In this document: positions 15,248 through 64,000 of the stretch, one piece after another
Position numbering within the stretch: the stretch's first letter is position 1
Layout: the number at the start of each line of letters is the position of its first letter
Source of the DNA: Penicillus capitatus
Taxonomy: Eukaryota; Plantae; Chlorophyta
Reading direction: 5' to 3'
Assembly: GCA_965649825.1 (NCBI GenBank)
Contig: OZ287694.1
Location: 867,197-931,196 of the forward strand
Length of the DNA: 64,000 nucleotides
Program-made: the position numbers and the translations under genes
Notes under the pieces: model-generated
Database searches by the model: none
Seen by the model: the letters and a program-made list of their open reading frames with translations, nothing else
What the model was told of the DNA's origin: nothing

Positions 15248-18200
15248 TTAAACATCAGTTGATGCTCTGGAGTGTGATTGTGGATTGGAGACGCCAGTTT
15301 CTTGTCGTTTCTGACACAAAAGACTCAAAGAATCAGTTATGCTTGCTAAGCCATAGGCTGCTAGGACACGACACATTCCCCCTTCTTGTGCTTCCCTTAC
15401 CCCCTCTTCCTTAAGTACTGCTCTCACATAAATCTCCGCCGTCTTAAGGGTCTTGTGTAGAAAAAAGAGAAACAGGCCAGTGATGGCCAAAGACAATGAA
15501 ATAGTGAGCAGCACTTTGGAAGTGTTGGATGTTCGCTCATCGCTGAAAAGAAGACCAGCGGCAAAAGTGAGCTGCGAAACGATCAACGATGCCGTTTCGT
15601 AAGAGTTCAGGGCGTCAAATTCCTTCTTGTATGGCTGACAAGAAAAATGCGCATAGGTGGCACATGTCAGCACGGAGAGAGCGAGAATTCCTTGAATGTT
15701 GGCACCCAGTGGATAACAGAAAACGATAATCGTTGCCAGAACTGCCTTGCGGAACATGATGATGGACTCCCAGAAGACAAAGCGCTCTTTGTAGGCTCGA
15801 TAGAGAAAACTCGTTGCATCGGAGAACCACAGGATCTTGTCAGCTTCCAAAGCACGCTGTTTAATCAGAGCGTAGACCAAAGCAATGGGCAGTCCAGCAG
15901 AGATGATGATAACGACAGGCCAACCGACCGTGGTGGCCAGAACCGCGTGCGAGCCTTCGTAGCATTTGAGAGATGTGTCCACTGCCCAGTAACGGTCTAT
16001 CCTGTCGACGTCGACCTCTACAGAATCGTGGACGTCAATGCAATAGAGGGCATTGACTGCTGTCCGGGTGATGGAGACGTAGGTCAGGTAGGCCACGACC
16101 AGAAAACTCAGCAGTGCTCTCCTGGCAAAGTACCACACATTTTCATCGAGTGTCCACATCAGCGTCAGCCAAAAGGCAATGTAGAACATCAGAACGGCAA
16201 CAGGAACCAGCAGATAGATCACTGTTCGAATGATGGACCGAGCTGGTTCCTGTTCTGCACTGAAGAAACAGTCGATGGAGAGCACGATGCCCTCAGATGC
16301 GGCTCCACTCACAAAATCTGCCAATCGCATACACCGTAGACACCGGATCACGTCATATCACGTCTTACCTGCTGCCGAGAGCAACGAAAGCATCCACGTG
16401 TTCCAGTCTGCATTGATGGTCGCAGCGGATGCCACAATTTGGAGAAAGTTGACCGTGATCTGACAGTCCAAGAGAGCGGTCAACAATGCAAGACAGGGTA
16501 TGCAGAGATGGCGCACTTTGAAGATCTCGACGATGTGGTTCTTGGCCAGTACTGGATCGTCTTTCATTCTCTTTTGGAGAGCGGCGGACATGATCAGGTC
16601 TGGATGGACGATCTCTGGCGGTACGTATCCACTCTGTAGCATTTCCACCATCTGAAAATCGACCGGAACATCCGTCACATGCTGTTCGGCTTGCACAATT
16701 GGAATCCGATTCCTTCGGCTGACTCTCGAAGCCGTGGAGGGTGTCACACGTTTTCTGGGAAGATTGCTTCGAATGGCAAAGCACGAAAGACCGAACAGCA
16801 CAATCAGAGAGAGCACGAAGAGTCCAGCTGCGGCGAAATCGCTGTAACACTTGCCGCAATTGAAGGCAAGTGAGCGTCCATATCCCGATTCACACGATCC
16901 ACAGAGAACACCCGTATATCCCTAGGCCATATCACTCCATCCATAGATATGTGGACGCCAGTCAATAGAGATCACTTTTTTGCACTGTGCTTCGGTGTAT
17001 GCCGTGTCCAGCGTCTCATTGTAATCACAGCTGTCCACATCCTGCGTTGCCGCCACCAGATCCGCCTCACGCTCAGCGAAGCCGCAAGCCTCTTTCGAGA
17101 GACACTGTTGCATGTACTGCGAACACGGGATTCGGTGCCAGTATCCCTTGTCCGGGTGGATGACATTGGTCGTGCAGTTTCCATGTTCCGGACAAGGCAC
17201 GCAGGCAGAGTGATTGGATTTGAAATTGTACTGCGATCCACTGCATTGCACACAGAGCGTGCCGTTCTCCTGGACAAACTCGCCAATCCGACAGCTCCGA
17301 ACTTCGACTTCAATCAGGAGAGCTGGCAGTCCAGGTTCGCTGAAATTGATATGAATCTCGTAGACTCCTGGATGCTGGAGATTTGAAATCGCTGGAAACG
17401 GTTTAGGCTGCTCGTCTAGGGGCACCGTCAGTTCTCCAGAAATGAACCGATCCGGAGACGAGATGGTTGCCAGAATGACTGCATCTTCTCTGCCAAGGGA
17501 CAGGTTCTGGCCAAATCCATCCACAACGTCAACGAAAAGCGGCGGAAGGGGATCTCCACTTCTGTGATTGCGAACAACGACTCGATGATCTTTGAAACGT
17601 ATCTCTTCGTTTGGACTCTCTGGGTTCTCGATGAATGCCCGAGTGGACTGGGCATAGGACGCAAGAATCGGACCGTAGCGATGGGCATCGTTTGATTCCC
17701 AATCGGAACACGCTTCGCGATTTGGATGGAAGGTGTCGAGTTTCTGGAAGGTCTTGTTCGAGTGCAGCTCTGGTGGGACGCTTGTCTTTTTGCTGCCACA
17801 TGAGTAGCGCAAGATATTGGCATCTTGCACAAAGATGCCGCCACCTGCAACGTCGGCGCTGTTTCTCAAGAGACCGCAGCCAGTTACGGCGACGAATGTG
17901 CACGAAGCATTGGTTCGGGAACAGCTTCTCGGTCCGTATCCAGTAGACACATGGACAGCACCTGCAAACGTGGGTATTCAGAATGGATGATCGCAAATGG
18001 TTAAACGCACCTCCTAGATCAGCTCTGTTGTAATTGAATGCACATTCGTTCAGCTGCAGTGCCAGATTCTGCGGCACGTCCGATTCGAAGGCGATGCCGC
18101 CGCCATGTTCTCCAGCGACATTGTCGCTGAACGAAGAGCTGGACGACAGGAATCTCGATGATCTGTCTGCGAAGACGCCGCCGCCTTTAGCTTCAGCGTG

Positions 18201-21200
18201 GCACGCCGAGATCCACAGTTCAGAAGATGTCATACTCGATCCAGAAAGTGTTATTCCGCCTCCCGTCCTCGCCGCACAGCTCTTGACGAACACATCGATC
18301 AAGGCTGCTGAACTGTTCTGCATCAAGGCCATCGACCCTCCAGATTGTGTGGCCTCGTCGTGCAAAAAGCTGGCGTTGTCCACTTGCAGATTTGAATGCG
18401 CGAGCAACAACGAACCACCAATGGATGCTTTGTTTTTCGAGAAGGTGCTCTGACTCACGTTCGCGACTGAATTCTCCGAATGGACTCCACCTCCAGCTAC
18501 AGTCGCCAGATTGTGATGCATTTCGCTGAGACGGATCGTCACACTGCTGTTCACACGGCCAAAGATGCCAGCTCCGTATCTGGATCTACTGCCGTTAATG
18601 ATCGATTCTGCGATTGTCAAGACACTCATCTGGTCTCCAAACAACGCTCCCCCTTGGTCACCCGCGGAGTTATTCTGAAAAGTGACGTCTCTTGCACTGA
18701 ATGTGGAGCCATGACTGTAAATGCCTCCACCGAGGATGCCTGCACGGTTGGATAAAACTGTGGAGTTCTCGAGCACAACGTTTGCTCTTTGGTAGACACT
18801 CAGTCCTGCTCCATTGCTTGCCATGTTCGATTCAATGCTGCAGCGTTGCATGAAAACAGTCGAGTTGTCTATGTGCATCGCGCCGCCAATACGTGCCGTG
18901 TTGTTGCGGAGATCCGAGCGTAAAATATTGCACTCGATCACACCCTGAAGACTAATCCCTCCACCAGATCCGGGTGATTCGCAACGGTTGCCTCGGAGTG
19001 TCAGATTTCGGGCCAGGATCGGACCACAGAGGATGGCATCCATTGCTCCACCAGAGTTGATGGCTGCGTTTGAAATGAAGCGCGAATTGGTGATACTCAT
19101 GTTGCCCTGATGACAGGCAAGACCGCCACCTCGACTCGTGTGGGCGAAGTTCTGTGCGAACGTCACATTTTGTATGACGGTCTCTGAAGTCAAGACATCG
19201 ATGCCGCCGCCACGGTGACCTCGATTCTGTATCACCATACAGTTTCTGAGGCGCATCCGTGCTTTCGAAGAGGCAACCGCGCCACCTACGGTATCTGCAG
19301 AGTTGTCTGAGAAAAGGTCTTCTTCAGAGTCGACCGTTCCGTCCTCGAATGAGAATCCAGCTCCAGAGTTTGCTCGGTTAGATATGTAGAGCGATGCTTG
19401 TGACGTGATGTTTGATGATTCTGAAGAGAATCCACCTCCTTTCCTTTTTGCTGTGTTGTTTGTCCATCTGACCTCTTGGATGACAGCACTTTTCTGTTCA
19501 ATGAATTGTGCGCCGCCGCCGTTTTCTGTGACGGTGTTGTTGTAAAAGACAGATTCTTTGATAACAAGTTCTCCGGATCTGGATGACTGCAAGCATCCAC
19601 CGTTTCCAGACGTGTTGTTGCCACAATCTATGTGGGAAAGACTCGTCCGATCAACTTCCACGAGATATAGTGCCCCTCCAAACGTGGACGCGCTGTTATT
19701 CTCAAGAACAGAGAACCGCATGTTTAGGACATTCTTCTCAATAAAAATGGCTCCTCCGCGATCGCTGGCCACGTTGCTTCGAAATGAGCAGCGGCGGATT
19801 CTCAGGTCGGTATTCGTAGAAGCGACGGCTCCGCCGCTTTCCGCAGCGTTGGACTCGAAGCTGCAGTTAGAGAGAGCGAGCCTCTCAGTGGCATTGGACA
19901 GAATTGCCGCTCCTGACAGGACGGCATCGTTGCGGCGGAAGGCGCTGTCGGCGATGCGGACCCTTGAAGAGCGGTTGAGCACGATCGCCGAAGCTCCTCT
20001 ATTTCCTTCAAACTCGGCCTCCGTGATCTCCATCTCGCCGTTGTCGACTCGAATCGACGAGAGTCCATTCCCCCTCGAGGCGAGACCGGAGACAGAGGAG
20101 TTGGACTCCGGCGGCATCAACATCAACGACTGAGGCGCGTCTCCCGGAGACAGTCGGACGTTTCTCTCCAGCACCACTCGGCGCAGCGTGTTCCTGGAGG
20201 AGAGGCTCCCGAAGCAGCCGTCCCCGCACACGTTGTCCGAGAAGTCAACGTCCACCATCTCGATGGCGGAGCACGCCCTTCGGTCCACCGAGATACCGCG
20301 CGCTCCATCCAGAGAGTTGTTGCGGAAGGTCACATGGTGCAGCCGAACGGTTCCCTCCGTCGCGTCGGGACCGCACCCGCCCACCTGAACAATCGATCTG
20401 TCTTCTCTTTTCAGAGAGCACCTCTGGAAGACGATGTTCGCGATCGTCACGTCCTGCGACCTGCAGACAGATCAGCCTGTCTTCCACGAAAGCCAGTGAG
20501 CGGCAAGGACTCGCCTGATGAAGAAGATGTCCTGCTTCTTCGGACACCTGAATGTCGCCTTGGCTGCCCGTGGGGATACGCCGTCTTCCAGTTCTGTATT
20601 CTCGTCTGAAGACGCAGTCAGTGTCAGGTTCCACGAAATGACGACTGTCGTCGCCGGACGAATCACGTCGTTGCTCCTGATTCGAATGACATCCTTCTCT
20701 TGCGTGCAGTTAACAACGGCACCAAAGTCGATTCTCATGTTCCTCAAGGTCTCGCTGCTCACTGTCCATATCCTCGTGCCGCTGTTCAAAAACTCTGATA
20801 TCTCATTCTCCACGAGCTGACATAATGAATCTACTCAAACAGTGTTGCTCAATCAAGCTTGCTACTCGTTGGTTGTTTATGGTTACCTTGGCTACTTTGA
20901 TTGCTATCTGTCTGCTGTAACACATGGCGAGATCTTCTTTCCGCCTACCAAAAAACGCTCCTTGCTCGTTGTCGAAATTTCACGCAGCGAAAGGATAGTC
21001 TTTACTCACCTTGTCGGGCTTATCGTCGAATTTTCCTCTTCCCCATTCGATAGCCCGCGGCACGGACCAGCTGAGCTCTCCTACACAGCACAAGGTAGTT
21101 CATGCTTTCTTCGCACTCAGGATATCTATCGCGCAGTCGGCATCTTAATGTCGACTGTGAAGACTGTCGCTGAGAGGAAGGACATCAATTGTGACAGTGT

Positions 21201-22978: not shown

Positions 22979-23791
22979 TTAGAGCGATGTTGTTGCGTTT
23001 TCATTGGCAGGCATGGAACCCACTGCATCCGGTTCATTCAGTTCGAATCTCTGAAGCGAAGCACCAGGAGGCAATTGTCCGATGGACACACCGGGTGGTA
23101 TCTCTTCGAAGAAAATACCTTCTGGAGTCACTTCAAACGGAACTCCGGCCTCGATCAAAGCCCGTGCAACGACGAGTGCTTCTGTATCGCCGGTGGTAGA
23201 ACCGACCACCACTCCCTGAGTCGTCGGCAACGTCATGACCGGGCTCGGTGATGCAACCGGACTTGGTGATGCAGCAGCGACCGGGCTCGGTGATGCAACC
23301 GGACTTGGTGATGCAGCAGCGACCGGGCTCGGTGACGCACGCACGGTCGGTGACACAGCATCTGAAGTAGCAGTGGTCAATGCCGACCCTGAGATCGAAG
23401 CTGTGGCTCCGGCGCCATCACTCGAAGCGGTCGATCCGAGAGATAATGCAGGCGAGGATGGCATTTCCACGAAGATGCCTGTGATAAAGAAGCCAAAGTG
23501 GTGATCCAAAAGTCGCCGCTCGGTCATCTGGAAGACCATCGCTCGGCTGGCTTTGGACATCTCTGGCGTGAGGGTTTCCTCGTGCAACACGCGTGAAGCT
23601 GCACAGAAGCTAGCGACCATCGCCGACGAAATCTGCCGAAGACGATGACTTACTCGCAAGAGAGATAAGACTGTGCAGAACGACCTACAAGCACAGCCAG
23701 CCATCAACGAGGTGCGATTTTGCATGCCCTTAGGCATGACGAGAAAACGCACGAGGATGCAGATGCGTTTTCTGTTCGTCCGGCTCGACAT
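22979..23791 (-). CDS. Small secreted preproprotein A (type I) with Ser-Pro repeat linker
   Basis: Model MSSRTNRKRICIL|VVLHSLISLAT|SRVLHEE with 68-nt (phase 0) and 55-nt (phase 1) introns around a 31-nt micro-exon. Contains RRLLDHHFGFF and C-terminal ALIEAGVPFEVTPEGIFFEEIPPGVSIGQLPPG. Confidence 0.8.
   Translation of the reverse strand: MSSRTNRKRICILVRFLVMPKGMQNRTSLMAGCACRSFCTVLSLLRVSHRLRQISSAMVASFCAASRVLHEETLTPEMSKASRAMVFQMTERRLLDHHFGFFITGIFVEMPSSPALSLGSTASSDGAGATASISGSALTTATSDAVSPTVRASPSPVAAASPSPVASPSPVAAASPSPVASPSPVMTLPTTQGVVVGSTTGDTEALVVARALIEAGVPFEVTPEGIFFEEIPPGVSIGQLPPGASLQRFELNEPDAVGSMPANENATTSL
23238..23335. repeat. 42-bp coding tandem repeat (about 2.3 copies) encoding SPSPVA/SPSPVAAA
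   Basis: accgggctcggtgatgcaaccggacttggtgatgcagcagcg occurs exactly at 23238 and 23280, partially at 23322. Confidence 0.9.
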
Positions 23792-24140: not shown

Positions 24141-27100
24141 TCAGATGTCGGTAGATGTGCCCGGCCGTGCTCGAGAACTGGATCGGTCGGTACGGTGTCT
24201 GCGAATAAGGCGATGGTACAGAGAGACGAAATGCATGACGAGAAAGATTCTCAAGACACTGAGCATTCCCCATTCCTGCACATCCTCCATGCCTTCGCTT
24301 TCCAGCACTGCCTTGATGTACATCTCGGAGTATCTGAGGAGCTTGTATACGAAAAAGAAAAAGAGGCCACAGATGGACGTGGACAGTGCAATCGACAGGA
24401 GAATTCGAACGACTTCAGATGTACGATGGTCGTTGAAAAACAGGCCGCAAGCAAAAGTGAGTTGCGAAACAACTAGGGAAGACGTTTCGAGAGCGTTCAG
24501 AAAAGCAAAGTCGTTTTTGAATGGCCGGCAACAGACATGGATGTAGATTGCCAGTGAGAGCAAAGAAATGGCAAGGATGCCCTGGATGTTGACGCCCAGG
24601 GGGTACGAGAAAACAACGATGACAGCAAGGACGGATTTGCGCAGCATGACAATGGACTCCCAGAAGATGAAGCGCTGTTTGTAGGCGCGATAGAGGAATC
24701 CGGTGGCTTCGGCTGTCCACGAAGCTTCGGTTTGTTCTGTGGTGTTCTGTGTGACCAGGAAGCCTGCCAGAATGAGGGGCATGCCAAAGGAGATGAGTAT
24801 GATCACTGGCCATCCAATCGCGCCTGCGAGAACGGCGTGTGAACCTTCATAACATTTGAGGGACGTGTCCACTGCCCAGTAACGAACGGTACGATCCTTT
24901 TCGGTATCGGTCGGATCGGCCACATCGATGCAGTAAAGAGCATTGGCTGCTGTCTTGGTGATCGGAAGGTATGCCAAGTAAACCATAGCCATGCAACTTA
25001 ACAGCGCTCTTTTGGCAAAATACGAAAGGCCCCTGTTCAATCGGATGGCGAGAATGGTCCAGAGAGCGATGTAGAAGACGGTTATCCCCAGAGGCACGGC
25101 AAAGTGGATGACGGATCGCAGGACGGATCTTGGAGGATGATGATCTGTGGCGAAGAGACAGTCGACAGAGAGGACAATGCCATCGGTCGCAGCACCGCCC
25201 AAGAAATCTAGAAAGAGAGAACAGCATCGTCATCCGTGCATCACAGGCAACAGAACGCGCCTGCAGTTAAGAGGAGATTGCGCATCCAGTCCGTCCAGCT
25301 CGTGTTGATGTACACAGCGGCGGCGACAACTTGAAGAAAATTGATTGTAATCTGCAAGGCATGTATAAAGAGACCGTTGAGCTCATGCCAAGATCTCACT
25401 TTGAAGATTTCCACAACGCTTTGTTTTGCCACGACTGGATTTATCTTCGGCTCATTGTCTTCGTGGACAGCAGACGTCAGAAGATCCGGATGGACCATTT
25501 CAGGAGGCACATGTCCGCTGTGCAGCATTTCCACCATCTGGAAGTTGACGGGCACTTCTGTTGGTAGCTTTTTCGCAGATATACGTCGACGAATGCTCTT
25601 CTTGCTGGCTCGAACGACAAAACTGGTATCCATCGTCCGCGTGTGCAGGTTGCTTCTGATAGCAAAGCCAGACAGAAACAAAAGCACGATCAGAGAGAGA
25701 ATAAAGAGAGACAGCGTTCCAGCATTCTGGTAGCATTTGATGCAGTCAAACGAACGCGAACGTCCGTAGCCTCCATCGCACGATCCGCATAAGACCCCAG
25801 CATATCCCTGCATCACACATCTGTCCCATTCATTTCAGTATTGAACAGAGATCACACTTTTTTGCACTGGGCTCGGGCGTAGGCATCGGCCAGTTGCTCA
25901 TCTAGTTCACAGCTTTCCAATGTCTCCGTCGCCGTCGTCAGTTTCTTCTCTCGATCGGCGAAGTCGCATGCCTCTCTTGATATGCATTGTTTAATGTATG
26001 CTGAGCATGGTGATCGATGCCAGTACCCCCGTACGGGTTGGATGGCATTGCCAGCACAGTTTCCGTTATCAGGACAGGCAGAGCATTCCGATGCATTGAG
26101 ATCAAAATTGTATAGAGATCCGCTGCAGGATACGCAAAGCTTCCCGTCTTCCTGAACAACCTCTCCCAGTCTGCACTGTCGAACCTCAATCTCAATAATA
26201 AAGCGCTCGATACCAGGTTCACTAAAGTCGATGTAGATCTCGTAAGGACCTGGACTCTGAAGGCTTGAGATGGGCGGAAACCCCTTTAGCTTCTCATCCA
26301 GTAGCATGTTGATGGAACCAGTGAAGAAGCCGCTGGGCGATTGTATCGTGGCTGTGATGTATTGATCCTGTTGTCCCAAGGGAGGACCTTGTCCGAATCC
26401 ATCCAGTACTTCCATCTGAACAATCGGGAGTGGATCGCCGCTTCTGTGATTCGTGGCGACCAGATGGTTGCCCTTGATGGGTGCACGGTTTCCAGTGGTG
26501 CTGCCTCGTTCGGCGAATTCCAGGACGTTTGTGGCATAGGAAGCCACCGTATGACCATAACGACCGGCACGGTTTCGCGACCAGTTGGGACACACATCGT
26601 GAGCAGATGCCAAGAAGTCTAGATCCCCAATGACGTCAGCTGTGTAGGGTGCTGGCGGAATCTCTGTGCGTCTAGAAGAACAGGCGTAGCGGAGAATGTC
26701 AGGATGCTGTACAAAGATTGCGCCTCCAGCGATCTCTGCTGTGTTCTCTGAGAATGTGCTGCCTGTCACAGCAAAGAGGATACATGATGTTGTCTCCACT
26801 GAGCAGTTATGTGGGGTAAATGCTGTGGCGACATGCACAGCCCCTACAAGCCATTCACAGATGACGATCTCTCACAATATCCTCTAGACATGGTTACCTC
26901 CAAGACTTGCTGCATTACTCTCAAAACTGCCATTGTTGATCTGCAGTGCAAGGGATCGAGATGCCCCTGAGCTAAAAGAGATCGCTCCTCCTCTCACCCC
27001 AGCCACGTTATCATGGAAGACACAGTCTGAACAGAGAACCATTGATGTGCCTTTTGCCAGGATCCCTCCTCCGTCTCCAACTGCACGGCACATCTGAATG

Positions 27101-30100
27101 CGGAGATCATAGGCGGCCAGATCAGAGTCCAGCAGCCAGAGAGCACCAGCTGTGGCGGCAGAACTGTTTAACAAGGATGCATGGACAATCATCACTGAGC
27201 TGTTGGCGTTTGCTGCGATGGATCCACCATCTCTAGATGCTCTGCTGTTTTCGAACGTCACGGAAAACACCTGCACAGTGGAATTCTTCAGAAAGACAGA
27301 TCCACCGATCGACGCCATATTTCCCTCGAAGACCGTCTCGTTCACATTCCCTTCAGAGCTATCCAGAAGCAAACCGCCTCCCTCTTTTGTCGCTGTGTTG
27401 TTACGGATGATGCTATCATAGAGGGCGATTGCTGAGTTTGATTGGGCATGGATCCCTCCACCCTGCTGCGCACGACTGCTAACAATATGTGCATCTGTTA
27501 CCATGAAGACGCTCGATTCTTGGGCATGCACACATCCTCCACTGCCTTGTGCTTCGTTGTCTGAAAACGTCACCGCCTTGATCCGTGTCGTACTACCACC
27601 GAAGCTCGTTATCGCTCCACCGATCGACTGAGCCTTGTTGGAGATGGAAGTCGAGTTCTCGAGGAAGAACCTCGAACCTTTGGTGACAAAAATCCCTCCT
27701 CCATTTGTCGCACGATTCGAATGGATGTCGCAGTCAGTTGCATGGACGGTCGAGTTGAGACAGAAGATAGCACCGCCCTGTGCTGCGGTGTTGTTTTGGA
27801 TCGTGGAGTCGGAGATATTGAGTCCACTCCTTTCAGCGATTCCGATTCCGCCGCCGTCTATTGTACATTGATTATCTCTTATGATGAGCCTCTCTGCTGC
27901 GACAAACATAGTGAAAACAATATGAAACGCGCCGCCACTACTGTGGGCCTTGTTTGCTCGGAATTCTGAATCTGCGATCGACATGTTGCTGTCAAAACAA
28001 GCCAGACCGCCGCCACGGTTGTTGAGGGCGCTGTTCTCAATGAAGGTCGTGTTCTGGATGACGCTGGGAGCCTTGGCGATATTGAGTCCACCGGCGAAGA
28101 CATTGGCAATGTTCTGTGCGATGTGACAGTCTACGATCGTCGCTCTTCCATGCTGGATCGTCATTCCGCCTCCCGACGCCGACGCACGGTTTCCGGTCAA
28201 GGCGACCTGATTCAGATCAACATCTCCAAATTCGGTGCGCACTCCGGATCCTTCTTGAGCTGTGTTGTGGGATACGGTCGAAGACTGCGCCGTGAGATTT
28301 GATTCCTCCACGCCGATTCCGCCGCCTTTACTGGCGGCGCGGTTCATCGTCCAGTTCGATGCTTGTACAAGGACGCTGCTCTGTTCGAAGATCCAAGCTC
28401 CGCCTCCATTGAGCGCAGCCGAATTACCAGAGAAGGTGCATCGATTTACGATGACGTCTCGCGACGATCGGCTGTCGAGGCCGCCGCCCGCTTCGGCAGA
28501 ATTGTTATTCAGAGAGCAATTGCGGATCTCCATTCTGGGAGATGCGACCAACGAGATGCCGCCGCCTTTGCCGAGAGCCACGTTCCTATTCATCACCGAG
28601 TTCGCAATCATGCCGAGAGACATGCGATCACAGCGAATGGCGCCTCCGTTGGTCGCCGTATTGTTTTCGAATGCGGAATTCTCGATGATGAGCTCCCTGG
28701 CGGCCGACGCTGACAGACACCCACCATCCCCAGCCGTGTTGTTGCGACATTGCACTTCGGAGAATGTTGAAGGGCGGCTTTCTCGGAGGAAGACTGCGCC
28801 TCCGTTCCCGGTAGCATTGTTGCTCTCAAAGACGGAGGCGCGCAGTTCCAAACGACCGTTTGACAGATGGAGTGCTCCAGCATCCGTCTTCGCAATGTTG
28901 TGGTGGAAGGAGCAGTTGCCGATCGTCAAATTACCATCGATGGAGGCGATGGCAGCACCGCTCTCTGCGACGTTTCCCTCAAAGATGCAGCGGGAGACAC
29001 TGAGCAGCTCGGTGGCATTTGCGAGAATGGCACCGCCGGAATGGGAGACAGAATTTCTGCGAATGGAGCTGTCGGTGACAACGACGGACACGGCACGATC
29101 GAACACAAAGGGAGGATCTCTGGAACTCTTTTCGATGTCGGCGTCTGCTATGTCGACGTTGCTTTCCACAGCGCGAAGAATCGAGAGTTCATTGGACCTT
29201 GCGACCAGACCGGAGACGGCGGTCGAGGATCCAGACGGCGCCGACATCAACGCGATCGGCGAGTCGCCGTCAGACAGCCGTCTGTTTCTCCGGAGGACCG
29301 TGCCGTTCAGGACATTCTGCACGGCAAGTGCGGCAAAGCACCGATCGCCACAGGCATTGCCCAAGAAGACAACATCGACCATTTCCACAGAGGGGCACGA
29401 TGGCTGGGTGGCCGAGAGACCTTTGGATCCATTCAGCGTGTTGCGTCGGAAGGTCACGTGGTGCAACTTGATCACTCCTTGCCCATCGTCATCCGAAGCG
29501 CATTGACTAGCGATTCTGATGATGGATGCATCTGACGCTTCTAGGTCACACCCTTGGAAGACGAGGTTGGCAAGGACGACACTCGGCGACCTGCAAAAGC
29601 CATCCTTTGTACGACAGACCGAGTCGAGACGTGTGATCACCCGATCTCAAAGGCGCCGGCGTTCGACGGACAACGGATTCGAGTTTTGAAATCGGACCGA
29701 GGGAGAACGCCATCCTCCAGCTGGGCGTTCTCGATGTAGGATGTCAACGTTAGATTCCAGGGAATGAACACACGAGTGGGAAATCGTATGTCCCTTTCGA
29801 CGCGAAGAAGAACGACATCGTCCTTTGCCGTGCAGTTGACGACGGCACTGATGTCATTGGACACTCTTTCCAGCGCAGCATTGTCGATCGTCCACGTTCG
29901 GGTCGCCGCGTCCAACAACTCGGATATCTCTTGTCGCTCGAGTCGACATTCCGGGACCGTAACTGAAATGTACGGGGTCATACAGTTAGGATGGAAAACG
30001 CTGGAGAGCTACTTTGGGTTCGTGAACGTCGGCGCGTTTCTTGCAGAAGACCACGAGTGTCCTCACGCGTCTAGCAATGCATCGCATCTCACACGACAGC

Positions 30101-50470: not shown

Positions 50471-53400
50471 TCAGACACCGGATGAGGAGCCCGGATCTGC
50501 ATGCCGAGCTTCATTACTCTGTTCCGGATCTGTAGGCTGAGCTGCATGACTCTGGTTGCGTTTGCCACATAAACGTCCGATCAGGTGACCGATGCAAATG
50601 GAAAAGAAGACTCCCAGAACGCGAAAAACACCCCAGTTATGTGCTTCTTTCATGCCTTGCCCGTCAAGAACGACTTTCAGATACACTACAGCAGATGTGA
50701 CGAAACTGTACATCAATGTAAGGAAGAATCCGCAGACTGATATCGACAATAACGTCGTTACCAATATCCTCACTATGTCAGAAGGGCGGTCGTCATTAAA
50801 GAACAGGCCAGACATAAAAGTGAGTTGCGAGATAACCAAAGAACCTGTTTCCAGAGTGTTCAGAGAATGAAAATCTTCGCTAAAAGGTTGACAAGTGACG
50901 TGAACATAGTTTGCGAATGTGAGAATGCAGACAGCAAAGATCCCCTGGATGTTTGTTCCCAACGGATAGGAGAACGTCACCACAACTGTCAGGACAGCCT
51001 TCCTCAGCATCACGATCGATTCCCAGAAAACAAAACGCTCTTTATAGGCGCGATACAGGAACCCAGTGGCATCTGCCAGCCAAGGATTCTGATCGGGCTC
51101 CTGGGAACGCTGCCGGATCAAGACATAAGCCAAGAGGGCAGGCAGTCCGAAAGAGAAGATGGCGAGGACCGGCCAGCCGGCAGCCGCGGCGAGAACAGCG
51201 TGAGATCCCTCGTAGCACTTCAGGGAGGTGTCCAGCGCCCAGTACTCGTCGGTGTGATCATCGTCGAACCCTGTAGAATCGTGGACCTTGATGCAGTGGA
51301 GCGTGTTGACGGCCGTCTTCGTGATGGAGACGTAGGTTATGAAGGAGACTGCCAAAAAGCTGAGCAGCGCCCTCTTCGCGAAGTACCACGTGTTCTCTTT
51401 GTACTTCCGAGTCATGAGGATCCAGAAGATGAGGTAGAAGATCAGTATGCCTGCAGGAATGAGGAGTTGGACGACCGATCGCAGCACGGATCTGGGAGGA
51501 TCGTTGTGTTGATCGAAGAGGCAGTCGACAGAGAGCGCCACTCCTGCAGTGGCAGCTCCGCTTACGAAGTCTGCAGACACAGCAGCCAGTCAGCAGCCGG
51601 ATCTCGGATTTAAACAGCAAGCATACCTGCCCCGAATAGCAAGGAACGCATCCAAGACGTCCAGTTCACGTTGATGATTGCAGCTGCAGCGATCACTTGG
51701 AGGAAGTTGATGCTGATCTACAACACAGAACAGGTCGAAGGAGGGAAGCCACGAAGGACGTTCGTTCTGCCTTGAAGATCTCGACGACAGTCCGCTTTGC
51801 AATAACTGGGTCTGCTGTCGATTTTGTATCCTTAGATGCAGAGGCAAGCAAATCTGGATGAACCATCTCGGGAGGTACCTCTCCTCTGTACAGCATTTCC
51901 ACCATTTGGAAGTTGACTGGAACGTCGGTCGACGGTCTTTTCTTCGAAGGGACAAGGCGACGATTTCTTCGACTGATTCGATTCGTCGTGGCCTGATATC
52001 CCACCGGCTGAGTGTTCAGGTTACTTCTTATTGCGAAGCTGGAGAGAATGAGCAAAACGAAGAGAGACGCCACAAGAAGCAACACGGTTCCGGAATCGTG
52101 AAGACACATGCCACAATCAAATGACCAAGAACGTCCGTATCCAGCATCACATGAGCCACAGAGGAGCCCTGTGTAACCCTGAGACAGAGAACGCTCAGCA
52201 ATTGGAATATCACTGTCGAAGCTCACTTCTTTGCATTGGGCCTGAGAGTAGTCTCTGTCCAACGACTCGTCCAGTTCGCAGATCTCCATTTCGCTTGTCA
52301 CATCATCCAGATCGTCTTTACGGCCGCTGAAGTCACAAGCCTCTCGTGATACACATTGCTGAACATGTCGAGAACAGGGTGTTCGATGCCAGTAGCCTGC
52401 GTTTGGGTGGATGACTTCGGTGGTGCAGTTCCCATTATCGGGGCATGGTTGACACATTGTTGCATCTGGATCGAAGTTGTACTGCGATCCGCTGCAGAGA
52501 ACACAGAGCGTCCCGTTCTCCTGGGAAAACTCTCCCAGTTGACATCCTCTGACTTGGACCTCGACAGTCAGCGATTCCAGTCCAGACTCGCTGAAGTTTA
52601 TTTGGATCTCAAACCGGCCCGGACGCTGGAATCCTGTGATCGGCGGGAATCCCTTCCGCTTCTCGTTCACTGGCATGTTGATCTCTCCAGAGAACAGATC
52701 ATTCGGAGAACGCATGGTTGCCTCGACGAATGCGTCGCCTTCGCCGAGCGCAGGACTCTGTCCATACCCATCCAGGACCTCGACGAGAAGCGTTGGTAGG
52801 GAATCTCCGCTTCTGTGATTCTTGGAAACGAGTTCGTTGTTCTTTACCGGCTTCTCGGTCTTTGTTGCATCGTTGTTGCGTATGAATCCCCTGGCGGATC
52901 TGGCAGACGAGGCGATGTTTGGGCCGTATAGGCCGGCCTCGTTTGTGGACCACTCCGGACAGATATCCTTGGCCGATTCCAGCGCGTCCAATTCTTTTAA
53001 AACATCTGTCGCATCGATCGCTGGAGGGACTTCTGTGTCTTTGGGAGAGCAAGAGTAACGAAGGACTGTTGGATCTTTCAGGAAGATGGCACCCCCTGAC
53101 GTCTTCGCCTTATTCCTCGAAAACCTGCTGCCTGTTACCGCCACAAAGGCGCAGGGATCCTCTGGATTCGTGCAACTCTGTCTACGACTATGAGTGGCAA
53201 CGTGCACTGCACCTATAACATGATGACTCTCAGGAATTGTTTGCTTCTGAATTATTCCCACACCTCCAATACTGGCATTGTTGTCGTTGAATGTGCAGTT
53301 GTTTAGCTGCAGCGCAGGAGAGCGGGGCTCGGAGGAATCAAAGGCGATTGCTCCTCCATGTTTTTCAGCTTCATTGTCAATGAAAGCACATGTGGAGCAC

Positions 53401-56400
53401 AGAAAGATGGAGGAAAGGTTAGCATGAACACCTCCGCCTGATTCTACTGCCTCACATTCAGTAAACTCGACCCCATAAGCTGTGAGACTTGAGTTGGAGA
53501 GCCAAATGCCTCCCCCACTCTGTGCACTGCTGTTCGAAAACGATGTGTTGACGATGGTCAGCAAGTTCTTCAGATTCGCTGCAATAGATCCACCAGACGA
53601 GATCGCTGTGTGATCTGCAAACACGGAGTTCCTCAACTGCAAACTGGAGTTCCTCATGATTATCGATCCCCCGAGCTGGGCCATGTTTCTCTCAAAGGAA
53701 CTTGCATTTGCAGCCAGTTGGGCATCTTCCAAGAAGACAGCACCACCTTCTCCGACTGCAGTGTTGTCCGTAAGAAGACTGTCTTGAAATGAAGCCGTCG
53801 AAAATCTATCAACATAAAGGCAGCCTCCGAGTACAGAGTTGTTTTCAGTGAAGGAGGAGTTCCTTGCTTTGAAGACACCCGACACAGAACCATTGAGGCA
53901 TCCTCCTCTTACTCCAGCAGAATTGTTCCTGACGGTCGAGTTCACAGCAATCAGTTCCGCATCAACGACGCGGAAAGCACCACCAAATCTTTCAGCTCTG
54001 TTTAAGGATACCGACGAATCTTTAAGGATGAGCACACTTCCGGTGTAGACTCCCAATCCTCCGGCAGCACTGGATGCACTGTTTGTCTCAATCTTGCATC
54101 CAGTCAAATTCGCCATGGTTCCACTTTGAGCTGCAAGTGCTCCGCTGTCTGATGCCGAGTTGACCTGGAAAATAGATGCAAACACTTCGATCATAGACTC
54201 GCCAGAAGCGCTGATTCCTGCGCCAGTTCTGCGGCAAGTGTTTCCATCGATTGTCAGATTTCTGGCAGTGACTGAACAGAGTCCTACGTCCATGGCGCCT
54301 CCAGATCCGTCGGCATAGTTCGACAAGAACTGCGAGTTCACAATCGTGACGTTACTCTGAAAGCAAGCAAAACCGCCACCTCGATCTGGGATAGCTGAAT
54401 TCTCCAGGAAGGTCATGTTGCTCATCGTGGCAACTCCATCGGATACACTCACGCCTCCACCGAAAAACCCAACGTTCTGCGATGCCACACAATCTCTGAA
54501 CTTAATCGTCGAAGCACGTGTCGCTATTCCTCCGCCACCGCTTTGCGCGGAGTTTCTCGAATAGTTGTCGCCTGTCATTGTAGCAGTCCCATTCACAATC
54601 CATAATGCAGCTCCATCGGTCGTCGCTGAATTGTCCATGTAGTGAGATTCGAATGACTCGATGTCTGAATCTTCAACTGACAATCCTCCTCCTTTCAACT
54701 GGGCACTATTAGAAGACCATATGACTTTTTCTATTCGAATGCTGCTCATCTCGTAGATCTCTGCTCCGCCGCCGTTGAGCGAAGCCCGATTGTCTTGAAA
54801 GTGACTTTGCCGGATGATCAGACCTCTTGATGAATGACTGATCAACCCACCGCCTGTCGCAGCAGCATTCTTCTTCAGTGTACAGTTGACCAATGCTGTT
54901 TGTGGTGATGCAATAAGAGAAACGCCTCCACCGCTGTTCCGGGCCACATTCTTTCTTAAGGTTGTGTGCTCCATGTTGCTGTCAGAGATGCTGTCGCAGT
55001 AGAGTGCCCCGCCGTTCTCTGCAGCATTCTTTATCAAGACAGATCTCTGGATGACGAGTTCTTCTGTTAGGAGTGCCGACAGACACCCTCCATTACCAGC
55101 TGTGTTGTTGCTGCATTCTACATTGGATATTCGTGATGCAGTCGTCGCCTCAATAAAGATTGCGCCTCCATTACCAGAAGCAGTGTTGCTCAGAAAGATA
55201 GAGGAGGACAGCTCTAGCATTCCGTCGGAAACAAGGAGTGATCCTGCATCCTTGATGGCCACATTGTTTCGGAAGAAGCAATTGTGGATCGTCAAATTGC
55301 CGTCAAAGGAAGCGACGGCGGCACCGGTTTCTGCAGAGTTAGAAGTAAAATTGCAATTAGACACCGCGATACTGATAGTGGCATTTGAAAAGATCGCAGC
55401 TCCAGATTGCTGGGCGAAGTTCTCATGGAATGCACTGTCTACGACCGTGACAGCTCGGGCTCGGTCCAGCAAGAGAGAGGATTCGCTGGAGGTTTTGATC
55501 TCAGCAGCCCTCAACTCCAGACTGCCTTCGACGATATGGATGACAGACAGTTCGTTTGAACTGGCTCTCAGACGGTTAATCGTCGACGAAGATCCTGACG
55601 AGGACGACATAAGGGTTGACGATAACCTTCCTTCAGAGATGCGTCTGTTCTTCCTCAGAGTCAATCCTCTTAGATCGTTCTCCAGAGAGAGTCTGGCAAA
55701 GCACCGATCACCGCAGGTGTTGTCTGAGAAGGCGACGTCGATCATCTCCAAGGACGAGCAGGACGAACTGGAGAAGGAGAGACCACTGGCTCCGTCGAGC
55801 GAGTTTCGTCTGAACGCCACGTGATGGAGCCTGATCAATCCCGGAGAGCTGTCCGGCAAGCAGTCGCCGACCTCGATGATGGAGGCATCATCTCCGTCCA
55901 ACGAGCAGCCCCGAAAGACGAGATTGGCCAGGAGTACACTTTGAGACCTGCAGAAGACTAACGGTCAGTCACATCGCCAATCACGCATTTGCTTTTACCT
56001 GATGTGAAAGATCCCATCCTTCGGCGGACATCTGAGTCGGACCTTTCTCTCTGCCTCCGGGAATGTACCATCAGCGAGCTTGGTTGATGTGACGTAGGAA
56101 CTCAGAGTGAGATTCCAAGGCACTGTGACTCTGGCAGGCACTCGTATGTCGTCCTCGACGTCCAGAAGAACGACATCGTTCTCTCTTGTGCAGTTGACGA
56201 TGGCACCAAGATCATCGGATACGCCTTCCAGTGCCGCCGAGTCCACCAACCATGTCCTCGTCTCTTCGTCCAACAGCTCTGCTATCTCTTGTCGTGTCAG
56301 CTGGCACGCCACATCTGTCCACGCCAGACACAGTTGGACTATGGTTTCAGAACAGCTTCTCCCTTACCTTCGGTATCAGGGCCGCGGGATCTTCTCTGCG

Positions 56401-56854
56401 CCAAACCACGAGTAGGCGGGCGACCCTTACAACAGTCACGTTCAACACCGCAACCCGAGAGATAGAGAAGGTAACAAGATACCAGAGCTTCTTGAGGGAA
56501 TCCGGCTTTCTGTAGATTCCAATCTGCAGTGTGTCCACTCCTAGTATCTAGCAAGACGACATCATCACTACGTCGTCGTATTGCGAGAAACGCAGACAGG
56601 CGCAGTACGCCGTACGCCGTACGCGAACGCGAGAAGTGAAGTCCACCGCCGTATAAGCAGATTACGGATGCGACGTCTAGAAAACCCGCTTACAAACCTG
56701 GAGAGAATAGTTTTTCGGTGAAATTGACGCGTTTGCTTTCTTTGATCGTTGCGTTGACCCTTGTAAACAACAGAAGCAAGGAGCAGAGGTGAGTCATTTT
56801 GGAGCATTGGCGGAATTTGCGGCGGGAGTATTCTCTCCCTTTCCGCATCTGCAT
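50471..56854 (-). CDS. Receptor-like protein copy 5 (head type II)
   Basis: First exon ...MTHLCSLLLLFTRVNA|TIKESK; ORF 51693-55901 spans beta-helix, stalk and TM1; TM exon 50471-51580. Ends SSGV-TGA. Start codon approximate. Confidence 0.85.
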
Positions 56855-58695: not shown

Positions 58696-59319
58696 ATGTC
58701 GTCGTTAGCACTCAGGCACTGTTTCTCTTGCTTTGTGAGTCGTCCATCGATATTTAAACGGATCTTTAGCTAACTCAGCGGTTTTTATCTTAAGGCGATA
58801 CTGTGCTGTCTCGCTCTTACTAATGGTAAGTCCCTCGAACAAGAAATCGTGTATAACAGTAGAAGAATAAACTGTTAGCCACAAGAGGTTTCGCAAGGGA
58901 AGCTGCTGCCGACCAAGAACTCCTGGACGATACGATGACGTTGAATGTTGATAAGCAAAGAAGACGATTATTACAGGACGGGAGATATCGCGTCCCTGAC
59001 CCACCAATCGCGGCTGCTGATGTGGCGGGTAGGAGCTTCCTTCCAGTCCGTCTGTGCGAAGGGGTCATTTTTAGAGGAGCTGTCGAGTTGCGATGGCTTT
59101 TTTGCAGTTGTTGAATGCATCCCAGCTAACACAGGACGGGCTCAGCTCAGGGGAATCTTGAGTCGTCTATTCGAACCGAACGACCTTGTTTTGTTCACGT
59201 TTCTCCTTGATCTGGGACTGCCGTTCACTATTCAAACTGATGGCATCTTTTTTGACCTGACAATACCCACGCGCTGCTCAGTTTCAGTGGTGAAAACTCT
59301 TGATATGATCCTAGGATGA
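58696..59319 (+). CDS. Small secreted preproprotein D (type II)
   Basis: MSSLALRHCFSCF|AILCCLALTNA|TRGF with a 31-nt micro-exon; RRRLLQ; third 46-nt intron; VECIP; C-terminal FLLDLGLPFTIQTDGIFF (diverges afterwards). Confidence 0.7.
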
Positions 59320-61035: not shown

Positions 61036-64000
61036 TCACACATTGGAAGGTGGAGCTGGATTGTTGGGTTTATTCGAAGGTTTGTTTTTGCGGTTGCGAA
61101 ACAAGTGTCCAAAAGATCCTGAGAGGCGCATAGAAACATAAGCCTTCAAAACACGAAGGATACCCCAATCTTGAATATCTGTCATGCCTTGATCTTCGAG
61201 AACAGCTTTCAGATAGATTTTTGCAGATTTGACAAAGGTATAGGACAAAACAAGAAGATACCCACAGATTGCCATGGACAACAAGACTGTAAGAAAGATC
61301 TTGACAACACCAGACGTGCGATCATCATTAAAGAACAAGCCAGAGGCAAAGGTAAGTTGTGAAACAACCAAAGAGGCCGTCTCAAAGGCATTTAGAGAAC
61401 CATAAGGCTCATCAAAGGGCTGACAGGTACCATGGATATAGTTTGCGAATGTGAGAACGCAGACAGCCAGGATCCCTTGAATGTTTGTTCCCAACGGATA
61501 GGAGAACGTCACCACAACTGTCAGGACAGCCTTCCTCAGCATCACGATCGATTCCCAGAAAACAAAACGTTCTTTATAGGCGCGATACAGAAACCCAGTG
61601 GCATCTGCCAGCCAAGGATTCTGACCAGGCTCATGAGAACGCTGCCGGATCAAGACATAAGCCAAGAGGGCAGGAAGTCCGAAAGAGAAAATCGCGAGGA
61701 CCGGCCAGCCGGCAGCCGCGGCGAGAACAGTGTGAGATCCCTCGTAGCACTTCAGGGAGGTGTCAAGCGCCCAGTACTCGGAGGTATGATCATCGTCGAA
61801 CTCTGTAGAATCGTGGACCTTGATGCAGTGGAGCGTGTTGACGGCGGTCTTGGTGATGGAGACGTAGGTTATGAAGGAGACGGCCAGAAAGCTCAGCAGC
61901 GCCCTCTTCGCGAAGTACCACGTGTTCTCTTTGTACTTCCGAGTCATGAGGATCCAGAAGATGAGGTAGAAGATCAGTATGCCTACAGGAATGAGGAGGT
62001 GGATGACCGATCGCAGCACAGATCTGGGAGGATCGGTGTGTTGATCGAAGAGGCAGTCGACAGAGAGCGTCACTCCTGCAGTGGCAGCTCCGCTTACGAA
62101 GTCTGCAGACACAGCAACCAGTCAGCAGCCGGATCTCGGATGTACACAACAAGCATACCTGCCCCGAATAGCAAGGAACGCATCCACGACGTCCAGTTCA
62201 CGTTGATGATTGCAGCTGCAGCGATCACTTGGAGGAAGTTGATGCTGATCTACAACACAGAACAGGTCGAAGAAGAGAAGGCACGAAGGACGTTCATTGT
62301 GCCTTGAAGATCTCGACGACAGTCCGCTTTGCAATAGTAGCTGGTGGGTCTGTCTTTGCAATAGTTGGGTCTGTAGTGGATGCACTCATCGTGGATCCGG
62401 TTGCAAGCGGTTCTGGACGAACATCTTCAGGCTGCACCTCTGTGGTGTTCACCGTCTCCATTATCTCGAAGTTACCTGGAGTGTCAATTGACGGTCTTTT
62501 CTTTGGAGGGACAAGGCGACGATTTCTTCGACTGATTCGAATCCTTGAATTCTGATTTTTCACCGGCTGAGTGTTCAGGTTGCTTCTGATTGCGAAACTG
62601 GAGAGGATCAGCAACACACAAAGAGAGGCCACAAGAAGCAATACGGTTCCAGAATCGTGAAGGCACTTGCCACAATCAAACGACCAAGAACGTCCGTATC
62701 CAGCATCGCATGAGCCACAGAGGAGACCTGTGTAGCCCTGAGGCAGAGAAAGCTCAGCAATTGGAATATCACTGTCGAAGCTCACTTCTTTGCATTGAGC
62801 CTGAGAGTAGTCTCTGTCTAACGACGCGTCCAGTTCGCAGGTCTCCATTTCGCGCGTCGCGTCATCCAAATCCTCTTCACGGCCGCTGAAGTCACATGCC
62901 TCTCGCGATACACATTGCTGAACATGTCGAGAGCAGGGCGTTCGATGCCAGTAGCCTGCATTAGGATGGATGACTTCGGTGGTGCAGTTTGCGTTCTCTG
63001 GACACGGTTGACACGTCGTTGCATCTGGATCGAAGTTGCACTGCGATCCGCTGCAAGGAACACAGAGCGTCCCGTTCTCCTGGGAAAACTCTCCCAGCTT
63101 GCAATCTCGAACTTGGACCTCGACAGTCAGCGATTCCAGTCCAGACTCGCTGAAGTTTATTTGGATCTCGTACCGGCCTGGACGCTGGAATCCTGTGATG
63201 GGCGGGAAGCCCTTCCGCATCTCGTTTACTGGCATGTTGATCTCTCCAGAGAACAAATCGTTCGGAGAATGCATGGTTGCCTGGACGAATGTGTCGCCTT
63301 CGCCGAGCGCAGGACTCTGTCCATACCCATCCAGGACCTCGACGAGAAGCGTTGGTAGGGAATCTCCGCTTCTGTGATTCTTGGAAACGAGTTCGTTGTT
63401 CTTTACCGGCTTCTCGGTCTTTGCTGCATCGTTGTTGCGTATGAATCCCCTGGCGGATCTGGCAGACGAGGCGATGTTTGGGCCGTATAGACCAGCCTCG
63501 TTTGTGGACCACTCCGGACAGATATCCTCGGCCGATTCCAGTGCGTCCAATTCTTTTAAAACATCTGTCGCATCGATCGCTGGAGGGACTTCTGTGTCTT
63601 TGGGAGAGCAAGAGTAACGAAGGACTGTTGGATCTTTCAGGAAAATGGCACCCCCTGACGTCTTTGCCTTATTCTTCGAAAACCTGCTGCCTGTTACCGC
63701 TACAAAGGTGCAGGGATCATGTGAATTCGTGCAACTCTGTCGACGACGATGAGTGGCAATGTGCACTGCACCTATAACATGATGACTCTCAGGAATTGTT
63801 TGCTTCTGAATTATTCTCACACCTCCAATACTGGCATTGTTGTCGTTGAATGTGCAGTTGTTTAGCTGCAGCGCAGGAGAGCGGGGCTCGGAGGAATCAA
63901 AGGCGATTGCTCCCCCCTTTTTTCCAGCCCGGTTTTTGTCGAAGGTGCATTTAGCACATAGTAAAATGGAAGAGACATTTGCAAAAATGGCCCCACCTGC
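61036..64000 (-). CDS. Receptor-like protein copy 6 (5' part outside window)
   Basis: TM exon 61036-62112 and stalk 62294-63820 are near-identical to copy 5. Beta-helix repeats continue to the window edge. Ends PSNV-TGA. Confidence 0.88.

Follow-up and report, generated by a model that had tools for sequence, protein, structure and literature searches.

A tandem family of predicted beta-helix/TRP-like surface proteins with co-duplicated small orphan genes in the green alga Penicillus capitatus

The receptor and small-gene array

The subject here is a 64 000-nt stretch of contig OZ287694.1 from the green alga Penicillus capitatus, called the window throughout, in which giant genes that we term receptors (R1, R2, R4, R5 and R6) alternate with small genes (sA to sD). 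The minus strand between 15.2 and 64 kb holds five paralogous giant genes and one fragment of such a gene, detected by tblastn with pieces of R5 (E = 0), and four small open reading frames (ORFs) sit between the giant genes. The original prediction, made from the letters alone, had listed gene order and strands from R1(-) to R6(-), and tblastn and ORF comparison confirm that list.

Comparison contigs were taken from ENA metagenome assemblies, samples ERZ25074695 and ERZ26696514. L004 represents a second haplotype or strain of the window's species (98.7-99.2% nucleotide identity to the window), while L005 and L002 are adjoining pieces of one contig from a related species (nucleotide identity ~80-83%; synonymous divergence, dS, about 0.42-0.47). 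L002 and L003 are two contigs of ERZ26696514, with coverages of 149x and 154x. L001 is a locus from a third taxon, and L006 is Ostreobium quekettii CAJHUC010001009.1. The ERZ25074695 contigs that carry the family have coverages of 34-39x (L004, L009, L010 and L011) as against 344x (L001), so the sample seems to contain two related algae.

R1 (15239-20822, minus strand) was defined by tblastn with R5 pieces, by a match to the Pfam family Chlam_PMP (E 2.8e-12) and by its orthologue in L005. Its parts are an N-domain exon, PMP beta-helix, stalk, Cys-rich region, first transmembrane (TM) helix with loop, and a TRP/Flc-like TM core; a signal-peptide first exon was not found for it by similarity search with that of R4. 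sA (22982-23791, minus strand), a small gene of the tandem-orientation type, has the orthologue P0017 in L005. R2 (24147-30460, minus strand; similarity extends to 29948) was likewise found by tblastn, Chlam_PMP (E 3.2e-20) and an L005 orthologue, and its signal-peptide exon starts with the ATG at 30460 (MNRLAGRSSKRFALILAVFALLLKAHC). sB (32007-32702, plus strand) is of the divergent-orientation type and matches a hidden Markov model (HMM) of the small-gene domain at E 6.7e-30. Next comes the decayed receptor fragment (34732-36076, minus strand), comprising the C-terminal part of a helix and the start of a stalk at 95-97% nucleotide identity to R1; a local duplicate of 208 nt at 36183-36390 extends the whole feature to 34732-36390.

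In the right half of the array, R4 (41278-47577, minus strand; similarity to 46970) matches Chlam_PMP at E 1.3e-16 and NosD at E 2.8e-11, and has a signal-peptide exon from the ATG at 47577 (MAARAFHSFIRLHSEKCRVLVFLALSLLIYTKTVEA) that is kept in its orthologue. sC (48651-49259, minus strand), again of the tandem type, was recognized as an ORF, by paralogy and by the word-search match P0014. R5 (50474-56797, minus strand; similarity to 56312) gives the fullest receptor model of the array, with a signal-peptide exon from the ATG at 56797 (MTHLCSLLLLFTRVNA), an N exon at 55998-56312, a 1402-aa ORF at 51693-55901, a mini-exon, and a TM exon at 50474-51580. sD (58945-59319, plus strand; HMM E 1.2e-3) is a degenerate gene of the sB type. 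R6 (61057 to beyond 64000, minus strand) is cut by the window end; its identity to R5 is 94% over the stalk and 83% over the TM core.

The signal-peptide exons of R2, R4 and R5 lie 0.4-0.6 kb upstream of the parts defined by similarity. Measured to the signal-peptide ATG, the small gene is 1.07 kb away in the pair sC-R4, 1.55 kb in sB-R2 and 2.15 kb in sD-R5; sA is ~2.1 kb from the N exon of R1. The array layout is real and well beyond chance. Of the claim that one small secreted gene lies upstream of each receptor, the small ORFs at 1.07-2.15 kb stand, with the caveats that sD is decayed and that secretion is unproven.

Receptor architecture

The receptors are composed, in order, of a signal peptide, an N domain of ~100 aa, a right-handed beta-helix of ~900 aa, a beta-rich stalk of ~215 aa and a Cys-rich module of ~150 aa. 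After this module come one TM helix, a loop of ~100 aa, a mini-exon and a multipass core of ~330 aa. Pfam assigns Chlam_PMP (PF02415) repeats to the central ~900 aa (E 1.4e-6 to 3.2e-20 in R1, R2, R4 and R5), together with NosD/Beta_helix. The AlphaFold2 (AF2) model of the C-terminal 660 aa of R5 has about ten long helices at pLDDT 70-87; its overall pLDDT is 57, and the Cys-rich part and the loop are of low quality. The layout of a giant beta-helix multipass receptor with a signal peptide, as originally proposed, is upheld by Pfam, by the AF2 model and by the signal-peptide exons of R2, R4 and R5. From sequence we predict that the receptors are most likely giant type-I-like surface proteins.

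Ectodomains had also been described as divergent over a conserved framework of Cys spacing, introns and TM motifs, and the alignments agree. Amino acid identity among paralogues is 38-51% in the helix (the converted head shared by R1 and R4 apart, see below) versus 55-63% in the TM core, and between orthologues it is 66-80% in the helix versus 80-93% in the TM core. The Cys positions and two short introns around the 'INFLQV' mini-exon are kept in 5/5 copies.

The membrane domain and its homologues

A profile of the TM core, run against 1.84 billion representative proteins, gave 6057 matches at E <= 1e-3, of which 213 have E <= 1e-30. Among the top matches are many proteins 1.3-3.4 thousand aa long whose TM domain is C-terminal. 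The source was checked for 20 top full-length matches, and 20/20 are from Caulerpa lentillifera, Bryopsis sp. KO-2023 or Ostreobium quekettii, all Bryopsidales, in agreement with the call of a green alga that had been made without knowledge of where the DNA came from. Their Pfam content is the same as that of the window receptors, and the family is multicopy in Caulerpa, Bryopsis and Ostreobium. A further protein search with a diverse TM profile returned only ENA and Logan ORFs and did not widen the taxonomic range. We found no paper on this receptor family in a literature search.

When diverse family members were scanned, the sole recurrent Pfam family in the membrane domain was PF06011, 'TRP'. 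It was matched by 6/9 members in one set (best E 3.4e-9) and by 21/81 at E <= 0.01 in a larger one (best E 7.3e-13). Two Bryopsis proteins exceed its gathering score of 28.5 bits, GMH37409.1 (P0057) with 29.6 bits and GMH41758.1 (P0124) with 32.8 bits, and both are retrieved by the window TM profile, at E 7e-72 and 6.5e-54, respectively. Their matches cover PF06011 profile positions ~230-400, the region of the FLYRAYK..FWE..RK..PF..N motif. The resemblance to PF06011 that had been noticed from this motif is thereby borne out, by way of relatives, and the receptor TM domain is supported transitively as a divergent member of PF06011, the fungal Flc/Pkd2 family. The predicted signal peptide and extracellular head before ~9-10 TM helices (R2, R4, R5; AF2) are as in the layout of that family.

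Several other domains were sought with Pfam. An ML-like domain (PF14558 or PF02221) was not found in the receptor head, where only Chlam_PMP, NosD and Beta_helix are reported. There is no Pfam autotransporter domain, the receptor C-terminus being alpha-helical and multipass, and no PKD, REJ, GAIN/GPS or PLAT domain was detected in the receptors or their relatives.

The small-gene family

sA, sB and sC are paralogues that share a C-terminal domain of ~52 aa (43-48% identity, E 1e-9 to 1e-13) with the consensus AGVPF..TP.GIFFE.IP.GVSI..LPPGVSLEDF. The domain HMM recovers these three at E 1e-27 to 1e-30, and sD at 1.2e-3 over only the first half of the domain. A motif upstream of the domain is common to sA and sC ('RLLDHHWGFF'; 'RLLDHHFGFF' in sA). 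In sD the only recognizable part is LLDLGLPFTIQTDGIFFD, and its amino acid identity to the counterpart in L003 is 40% versus 75-85% for real genes; sD is probably a pseudogene. The small proteins are acidic and not Cys-rich.

Ratios of nonsynonymous to synonymous divergence (dN/dS) against the related species separate the small genes. sC is the best constrained (0.12-0.15 versus P0015), sA has 0.21 in the domain and 0.43 upstream of it, and sB has 0.73-0.85 versus its L005 orthologue. By these ratios sA and sC are constrained and sB is nearly unconstrained; sD, at 40% identity to its counterpart, is effectively unconstrained.

Evidence on secretion is mixed. The window ORF of sC begins with a plausible signal peptide, MTSPGGQRLLFTVAIASA/TEQ; its orthologue keeps the hydrophobic stretch, but with a stop codon and no ATG upstream. 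Also at sC, a short 'MF..SHFLLL' ORF followed by GTACG is conserved in both species. For sA a candidate first exon, MAGCACRSFCTVLSLLR, is followed by a GTGAGT donor, with 'MAGC.CRSFCTVL.LLR' conserved in both species; in the orthologue its frame differs from that of the downstream ORF. This mini-exon pattern is what would be expected for a short signal-peptide exon. Interspecies alignment of sA and sC thus shows conserved ATGs and hydrophobic mini-exons with GT donors, for which acceptor and phase are not fixed. sB has only a conserved Met, with no hydrophobic run and no clear signal peptide. The claim that the small proteins are secreted is therefore favored by the window copy of sC, and disfavored by its orthologue, which lacks that ATG, and by sB. 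A low-complexity (SP)n-rich Ser-Pro/Ala linker in sA (23300-23420), with ASPSPVAAASPSPVASPSPV repeated, is much shorter in P0017; such (SP)n linkers are typical of green-algal extracellular hydroxyproline-rich glycoproteins (HRGPs).

The family has few relatives. Pfam gave no matches for any of the small proteins at E up to 10, and a word-indexed search of 5.8 billion proteins returned only 5 matches, all on contigs of the same or sister taxa. Among JGI metagenome contigs 452 pattern matches to the small domain arose, none of which was confirmed, and the domain was not found fused within ~200 fetched receptor-family proteins. In the AF2 model of sC, a long beta-hairpin is accompanied by a helix and short strands, at pLDDT 64-82 (overall 61); the best Foldseek match of this model in the PDB has E 0.12, and no significant match came from searching PDB sequences with a profile. 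On these searches the small genes are a narrowly distributed orphan family. We also considered whether the small ORFs are upstream exons of the receptors, and this is ruled out because sA and sC end in stops that are conserved in the orthologues, while sB and sD lie on the opposite strand.

Duplication and gene conversion

Repeat spacing within the array is 26.1-26.4 kb, which together with the pattern of identities indicates a duplicated unit of two pairs, R1-sA-R2-sB corresponding to R4-sC-R5-sD. R1 and R4 are 89% identical in the N exon and 85% in the first 300 helix residues (amino acids), and 44-48% in the remaining helix. R4 and R5 are 77% identical in the stalk and Cys-rich module and 41-45% in the helix. 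R4 therefore combines a head like that of R1 with a stalk and Cys-rich region like those of R5, and such mosaic domain identities point to gene conversion or exchange between neighbors.

A second process is segmental duplication. Window positions 27281-39893 have a 12.6-kb copy (L010; ERZ25074695 ctg340529, 1,072,191-1,092,886), 92-95% identical, and 130 kb separate the two on one contig of the sister haplotype. The receptor in this copy is truncated and chimeric, its helix resembling that of R2 and its stalk that of R5/R6, with no further part detectable beyond the stalk; the copy keeps an sB-like gene (P0018) and, from its position 17541 onward, an intact SMC gene. In the window itself an isolated SMC N-terminal fragment occurs at 39112-39474 on the plus strand (SMC_N E 4.7e-21, Walker A present), which by this comparison is the truncated end of the 12.6-kb duplication. 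The block holding the decayed receptor fragment and the SMC fragment is missing from the related species and duplicated at L010.

Otherwise the order in the related species (L005/L002), R5'-sC'-R4'-sB'(opposite strand)-R2'-sA'-R1', is the window's order. R5' is intact in L002, whereas in L003 a piece of its N exon is fused to TM fragments, and the right halves of L002 and L003 are near-identical. L003 also carries R6' and an sD-like ORF to the left of the deleted R5'. The difference between L002 and L003 would reflect structural polymorphism between haplotypes or, alternatively, a second array of paralogues.

Pairing at other loci

The L001 locus contains a receptor of R1/R4 type, its head being 58-67% identical to those of R1 and R4 versus 43-48% to those of R2 and R5. 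An sA/sC-type gene stands in tandem 1.8 kb upstream of it, and the other flanking genes are unrelated to those of the window. In its TM core the L001 R4-like receptor is ~79% identical to R4; its small gene is only ~34% identical to sC. At L007, an unlinked locus, a weak sD-like ORF lies 1.75 kb from an R5-type receptor and is divergent from it. In the array sA and sC are upstream in tandem of R1/R4-type receptors, and sB and sD are divergent from R2/R5-type receptors. Across the window, the related species, L001 and L007, receptor subtype, small-gene subtype and orientation thus go together.

Many receptors have no such neighbor. The small-gene domain was not detected near the receptors of L008 and L011 (both R5-type), the second receptor of L001, or those of L009 (2), L012 (3) and Ostreobium L006 (2). 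The idea that all homologues are linked in pairs is contradicted by these nine or more paralogues.

On one view the small genes are unrelated passengers of the duplicated unit and the receptors act alone. Tandem duplication of a two-pair unit would fully account for the alternation, and segmental duplicates copy anything that lies inside them, the SMC fragment included. Most paralogues elsewhere do without a small gene, and sB and sD are relaxed or decayed. Set against this are the sA/sC-type genes, intact and constrained beside R1/R4-type receptors in three taxa, including L001 where the flanks differ, as well as the sD-like remnant beside the R5-type receptor of unlinked L007 and the fact that the small family is found only beside these receptors. 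Weighing both, we regard mere passengers as doubtful, though the least unlikely of the alternatives to the reading that we adopt below.

Selection and polymorphism

Between species, dN/dS is 0.33-0.38 in the helix, 0.22-0.27 in the stalk and Cys-rich module and 0.14-0.28 in the TM core; for R1 versus its L005 orthologue it ranges from 0.11 to 0.46 by domain. No positive selection was found in the receptors between species, no 60-codon window exceeding a dN/dS of 0.82. As judged from these ratios, the receptor and small genes are real, expressed-looking and under purifying selection, sB and sD excepted.

Polymorphism was evaluated from two haplotypes, the window and L004, a small sample that makes for a weak test. 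sA is identical between them, sC has one amino acid change (0.7%), and sB differs at 11/231 aa (4.8%); highly diverged allele classes are not seen in this pair. Over the 885 codons of the R2 helix there are 20 nonsynonymous differences (~2.3%) and 23 synonymous ones, and the polymorphism ratio pN/pS is 0.28. The density of single-nucleotide polymorphisms (SNPs) is 11 per kb in non-coding DNA and climbs to 20-42 per kb at its peak, which takes in the R2 head, sB and the intergenic DNA. Among the differences between the sB haplotypes is a compensated frameshift at 32070-32080 (LEVCSL vs LECRSL), in the part of the ORF that starts from GTG, which suggests that the true start of sB is the conserved Met at ~32145.

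These data bear on the central claim of the original prediction, that of an allorecognition, gamete-recognition or immune-like receptor-ligand locus. In this scenario each small gene would encode a secreted ligand with cognate specificity for the linked receptor, and the locus would serve to recognize self and non-self, gametes or fusion partners. In keeping with it, receptors are linked to small genes of matching subtype and orientation both in different species and at loci independent of one another. The roughly twofold faster evolution of the ectodomains relative to the TM core also fits, as do the SNP peak and the amino acid differences and high dN/dS of sB, the plausible signal peptide of sC, and the HRGP-like linker of sA. 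Alleles are near-identical, however, for sA (0 differences) and sC (1 difference), pN/pS in the R2 helix is 0.28, and dN/dS stays at or below 0.82 in every 60-codon receptor window. Cognate specificity is also hard to square with R1 and R4, whose heads are 85-89% identical while sA and sC share 48% identity over just 52 aa and are unalike outside the domain. sD has decayed while R5 is intact. R5-type receptors in L008 and L011 and about nine distant paralogues, including those of Ostreobium, have no small neighbor. Signal peptides are unproven for the small proteins, which are not Cys-rich. The available tests therefore lend the claim no support, and we rate a cognate ligand system as very unlikely.

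A third possibility is that the receptors form a diversifying repertoire against microbes or epiphytes on the giant cell surface, resembling innate immunity, and are not wall or mechanical sensors. Much of what is described above would fit: the large family in Caulerpa, Bryopsis and Ostreobium; clustered birth and death with conversion, truncated copies, and an R5' that is intact in L002 and internally deleted in L003; a helix that is the fastest-evolving domain; and the use of PMP-type helices as adhesins in Chlamydia (PMC10715098). Yet positive selection is not detected, and orthologues correspond one-to-one between species, unlike in the fastest-turning immune clusters. We consider such a repertoire unlikely, slightly more so than passenger small genes.

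Neighboring genes and introns

The window has a G+C content of ~50% and a eukaryotic character, and its left part (1-11000) holds ordinary nuclear housekeeping genes as identified with Pfam. These are a BTB protein (430-921, minus strand), a cytosolic HSP90 with one short intron (4135-6333, minus strand), a sodium:solute symporter (6556-7895 and on to ~8857, plus strand) and the centriolar protein SAS-6 with a coiled-coil tail (9015-10883, minus strand). The presence of a SAS-6 gene implies that the organism makes centrioles or flagella.

Visible introns are 40-65 nt long, and several are GC-AG instead of GT-AG. In the window, short introns, several of them GC-AG, occur at 51.5-51.8, 25.2-25.4, 42.2-42.5 and 16.3-16.5 kb. 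In R5 and R6, VSFDSDIPIAERSLSQ and VGIIQKQTIPESHHVIG occupy intron sites of the other copies, and may be in-frame, stop-free introns. The Ostreobium homologue on L006 takes 18 kb to encode 1773 aa, which means long introns, and a second family member is convergent with it; the window species fits the same architecture into ~6.3 kb.

Interpretation

The reading to which we lean, with confidence a little above even, is that surface sensors with a beta-helix and a TRP-like domain, a family seen to date in Bryopsidales alone, have evolved here in tandem by birth and death, together with an orphan gene that was duplicated along with them. By the repeat spacing and identities above, the array grew by duplication of a ~26-kb unit of two receptor/small-gene pairs; gene conversion and segmental duplication then rearranged it, and the small orphan genes were carried along with two receptor subtypes. 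The beta-helix head may bind something outside the cell; carbohydrate, wall material or a foreign surface would be the likeliest partner, as right-handed beta-helices of this sort usually bind partners of that kind. When bound, the head would control a Ca2+-permeable or Ca2+-regulating membrane domain of Flc/Pkd2 type. The receptor would thus be a surface or wall-integrity sensor, with a logic like that of fission-yeast Pkd2 or of polycystin-1/REJ, and the small proteins might be extracellular accessory partners of some receptors that are not required family-wide. The sensing and Ca2+ roles are inferred from the two domain families. In Schizosaccharomyces pombe, Pkd2 is a plasma-membrane protein that is Ca2+-permeable under membrane stretch (PMC9727806, PMC6727746), and Flc1 homologues, most of which have an ML-like head, govern calcium homeostasis (PMC9600462).

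Several results weigh against this sensor reading. The window's own TM domains have no Pfam match even at E 10, and it is because the window copies do not match PF06011 while their relatives do that the link to it is transitive. Foldseek of the AF2 model against the PDB gave a best E of 0.13 with TM-scores of ~0.1 and no TRP channel, and a profile search of PDB sequences with the TM domain gave 0 matches; since the model is of moderate quality, the lack of a structural match to a TRP fold is weak evidence. Yeast Flc proteins are described as flavin carriers too. Finally, the small genes keep their place beside the receptors at three loci, in matching subtype and orientation, which may point to a functional tie closer than 'carried along' conveys.

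The small proteins of sA, sC and L001 could even be secreted partners that bind the adjoining receptor-channel. Multiplied and recombining, such pairs would make up an undescribed recognition system of giant coenocytic algae, which might decide whether extruded protoplasm, wound plugs or gametes from one individual or from different ones fuse, through a Ca2+ pathway of Flc/Pkd2 type. We hold this to be a long shot.

Bryopsidales grow as single cells on the scale of metres and are remarkable for the way they heal wounds and regenerate protoplasts. The family described here unites a beta-helix of adhesin/carbohydrate-binding type with a TRP-like domain family of fungi, PF06011 being the only such TRP-like family from fungi that we know of. 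If the TM domain conducts or controls Ca2+, the receptors would be candidates for the surface receptors behind wounding Ca2+ signals in siphonous algae, and the Flc/Pkd2 family would extend beyond fungi with a new type of head. The small orphan genes offer a concrete, testable partner hypothesis. RNAi works in Bryopsis (PMC12961179).

Comparison with known systems

Brassica SRK/SCR, Papaver PrpS/PrsS and the basidiomycete pheromone/receptor loci resemble the array in that a receptor is tightly linked to a small gene (here 1.07-2.15 kb) and pairs are duplicated. The array differs from such linked receptor/ligand loci in having no hyperdivergent alleles in two haplotypes, small proteins that are acidic and not Cys-rich, and many unpaired receptors, and it has no sequence relationship to them. 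Tetrahymena MTA/MTB proteins have a large ectodomain, Cys-rich repeats and several TM helices, and no homology to them is claimed. SRK/SCR, PrpS/PrsS and ciliate MTA/MTB are layout analogies only.

Polycystin-1 and sea-urchin REJ, the latter acting in gamete recognition, likewise join a TRP-related multipass domain to an ectodomain that is modular and very large. Their PKD, REJ, GAIN/GPS and PLAT domains are not detected here, and their TM domain is of another family.

Chlamydial Pmp proteins (PF02415) share with the receptors the GGA(I/L/V)/FxxN repeats, a long surface right-handed beta-helix and a multigene-family organization. They are surface-exposed beta-helix autotransporter adhesins (PMC10715098, PMC11166332). 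In place of the autotransporter beta-barrel, the receptors here have a eukaryotic multipass alpha-helical anchor, along with introns and signal peptides.

With fungal Flc/Pkd2 proteins (PF06011: Saccharomyces cerevisiae Flc1-3, S. pombe Pkd2, Cryptococcus neoformans Flc1, Aspergillus nidulans TrpR) the receptors would share a homologous multipass domain, and both have a signal peptide and an extracellular head before it. In fungi, these proteins take part in Ca2+ signaling and in signaling of turgor or wall stress (PMC9727806, PMC9600462, PMC8618638). They are ~700-800 aa long with a small ML-like lipid-binding head (PF14558), whereas the receptors here have a ~1,300-aa head of PMP beta-helix, stalk and Cys-rich module. 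The receptors further differ by an extra TM helix and loop before the core, by window copies without a direct match to the PF06011 model, and by genes that are clustered and multiplied.

Within Bryopsidales, Caulerpa lentillifera g3968.t1 (EP00210_P004162), Bryopsis GMH37409.1 and GMH41758.1, and Ostreobium CAD7699384.1 were found by the TM profile at E 1e-123 to 1e-45. No small neighbor gene was found beside the Ostreobium copies, unlike in the window. CAD7699384.1 is annotated as 'Right handed beta helix domain-containing protein', and all four proteins, at 1.3-3.4 thousand aa, have the same full architecture as the window receptors.

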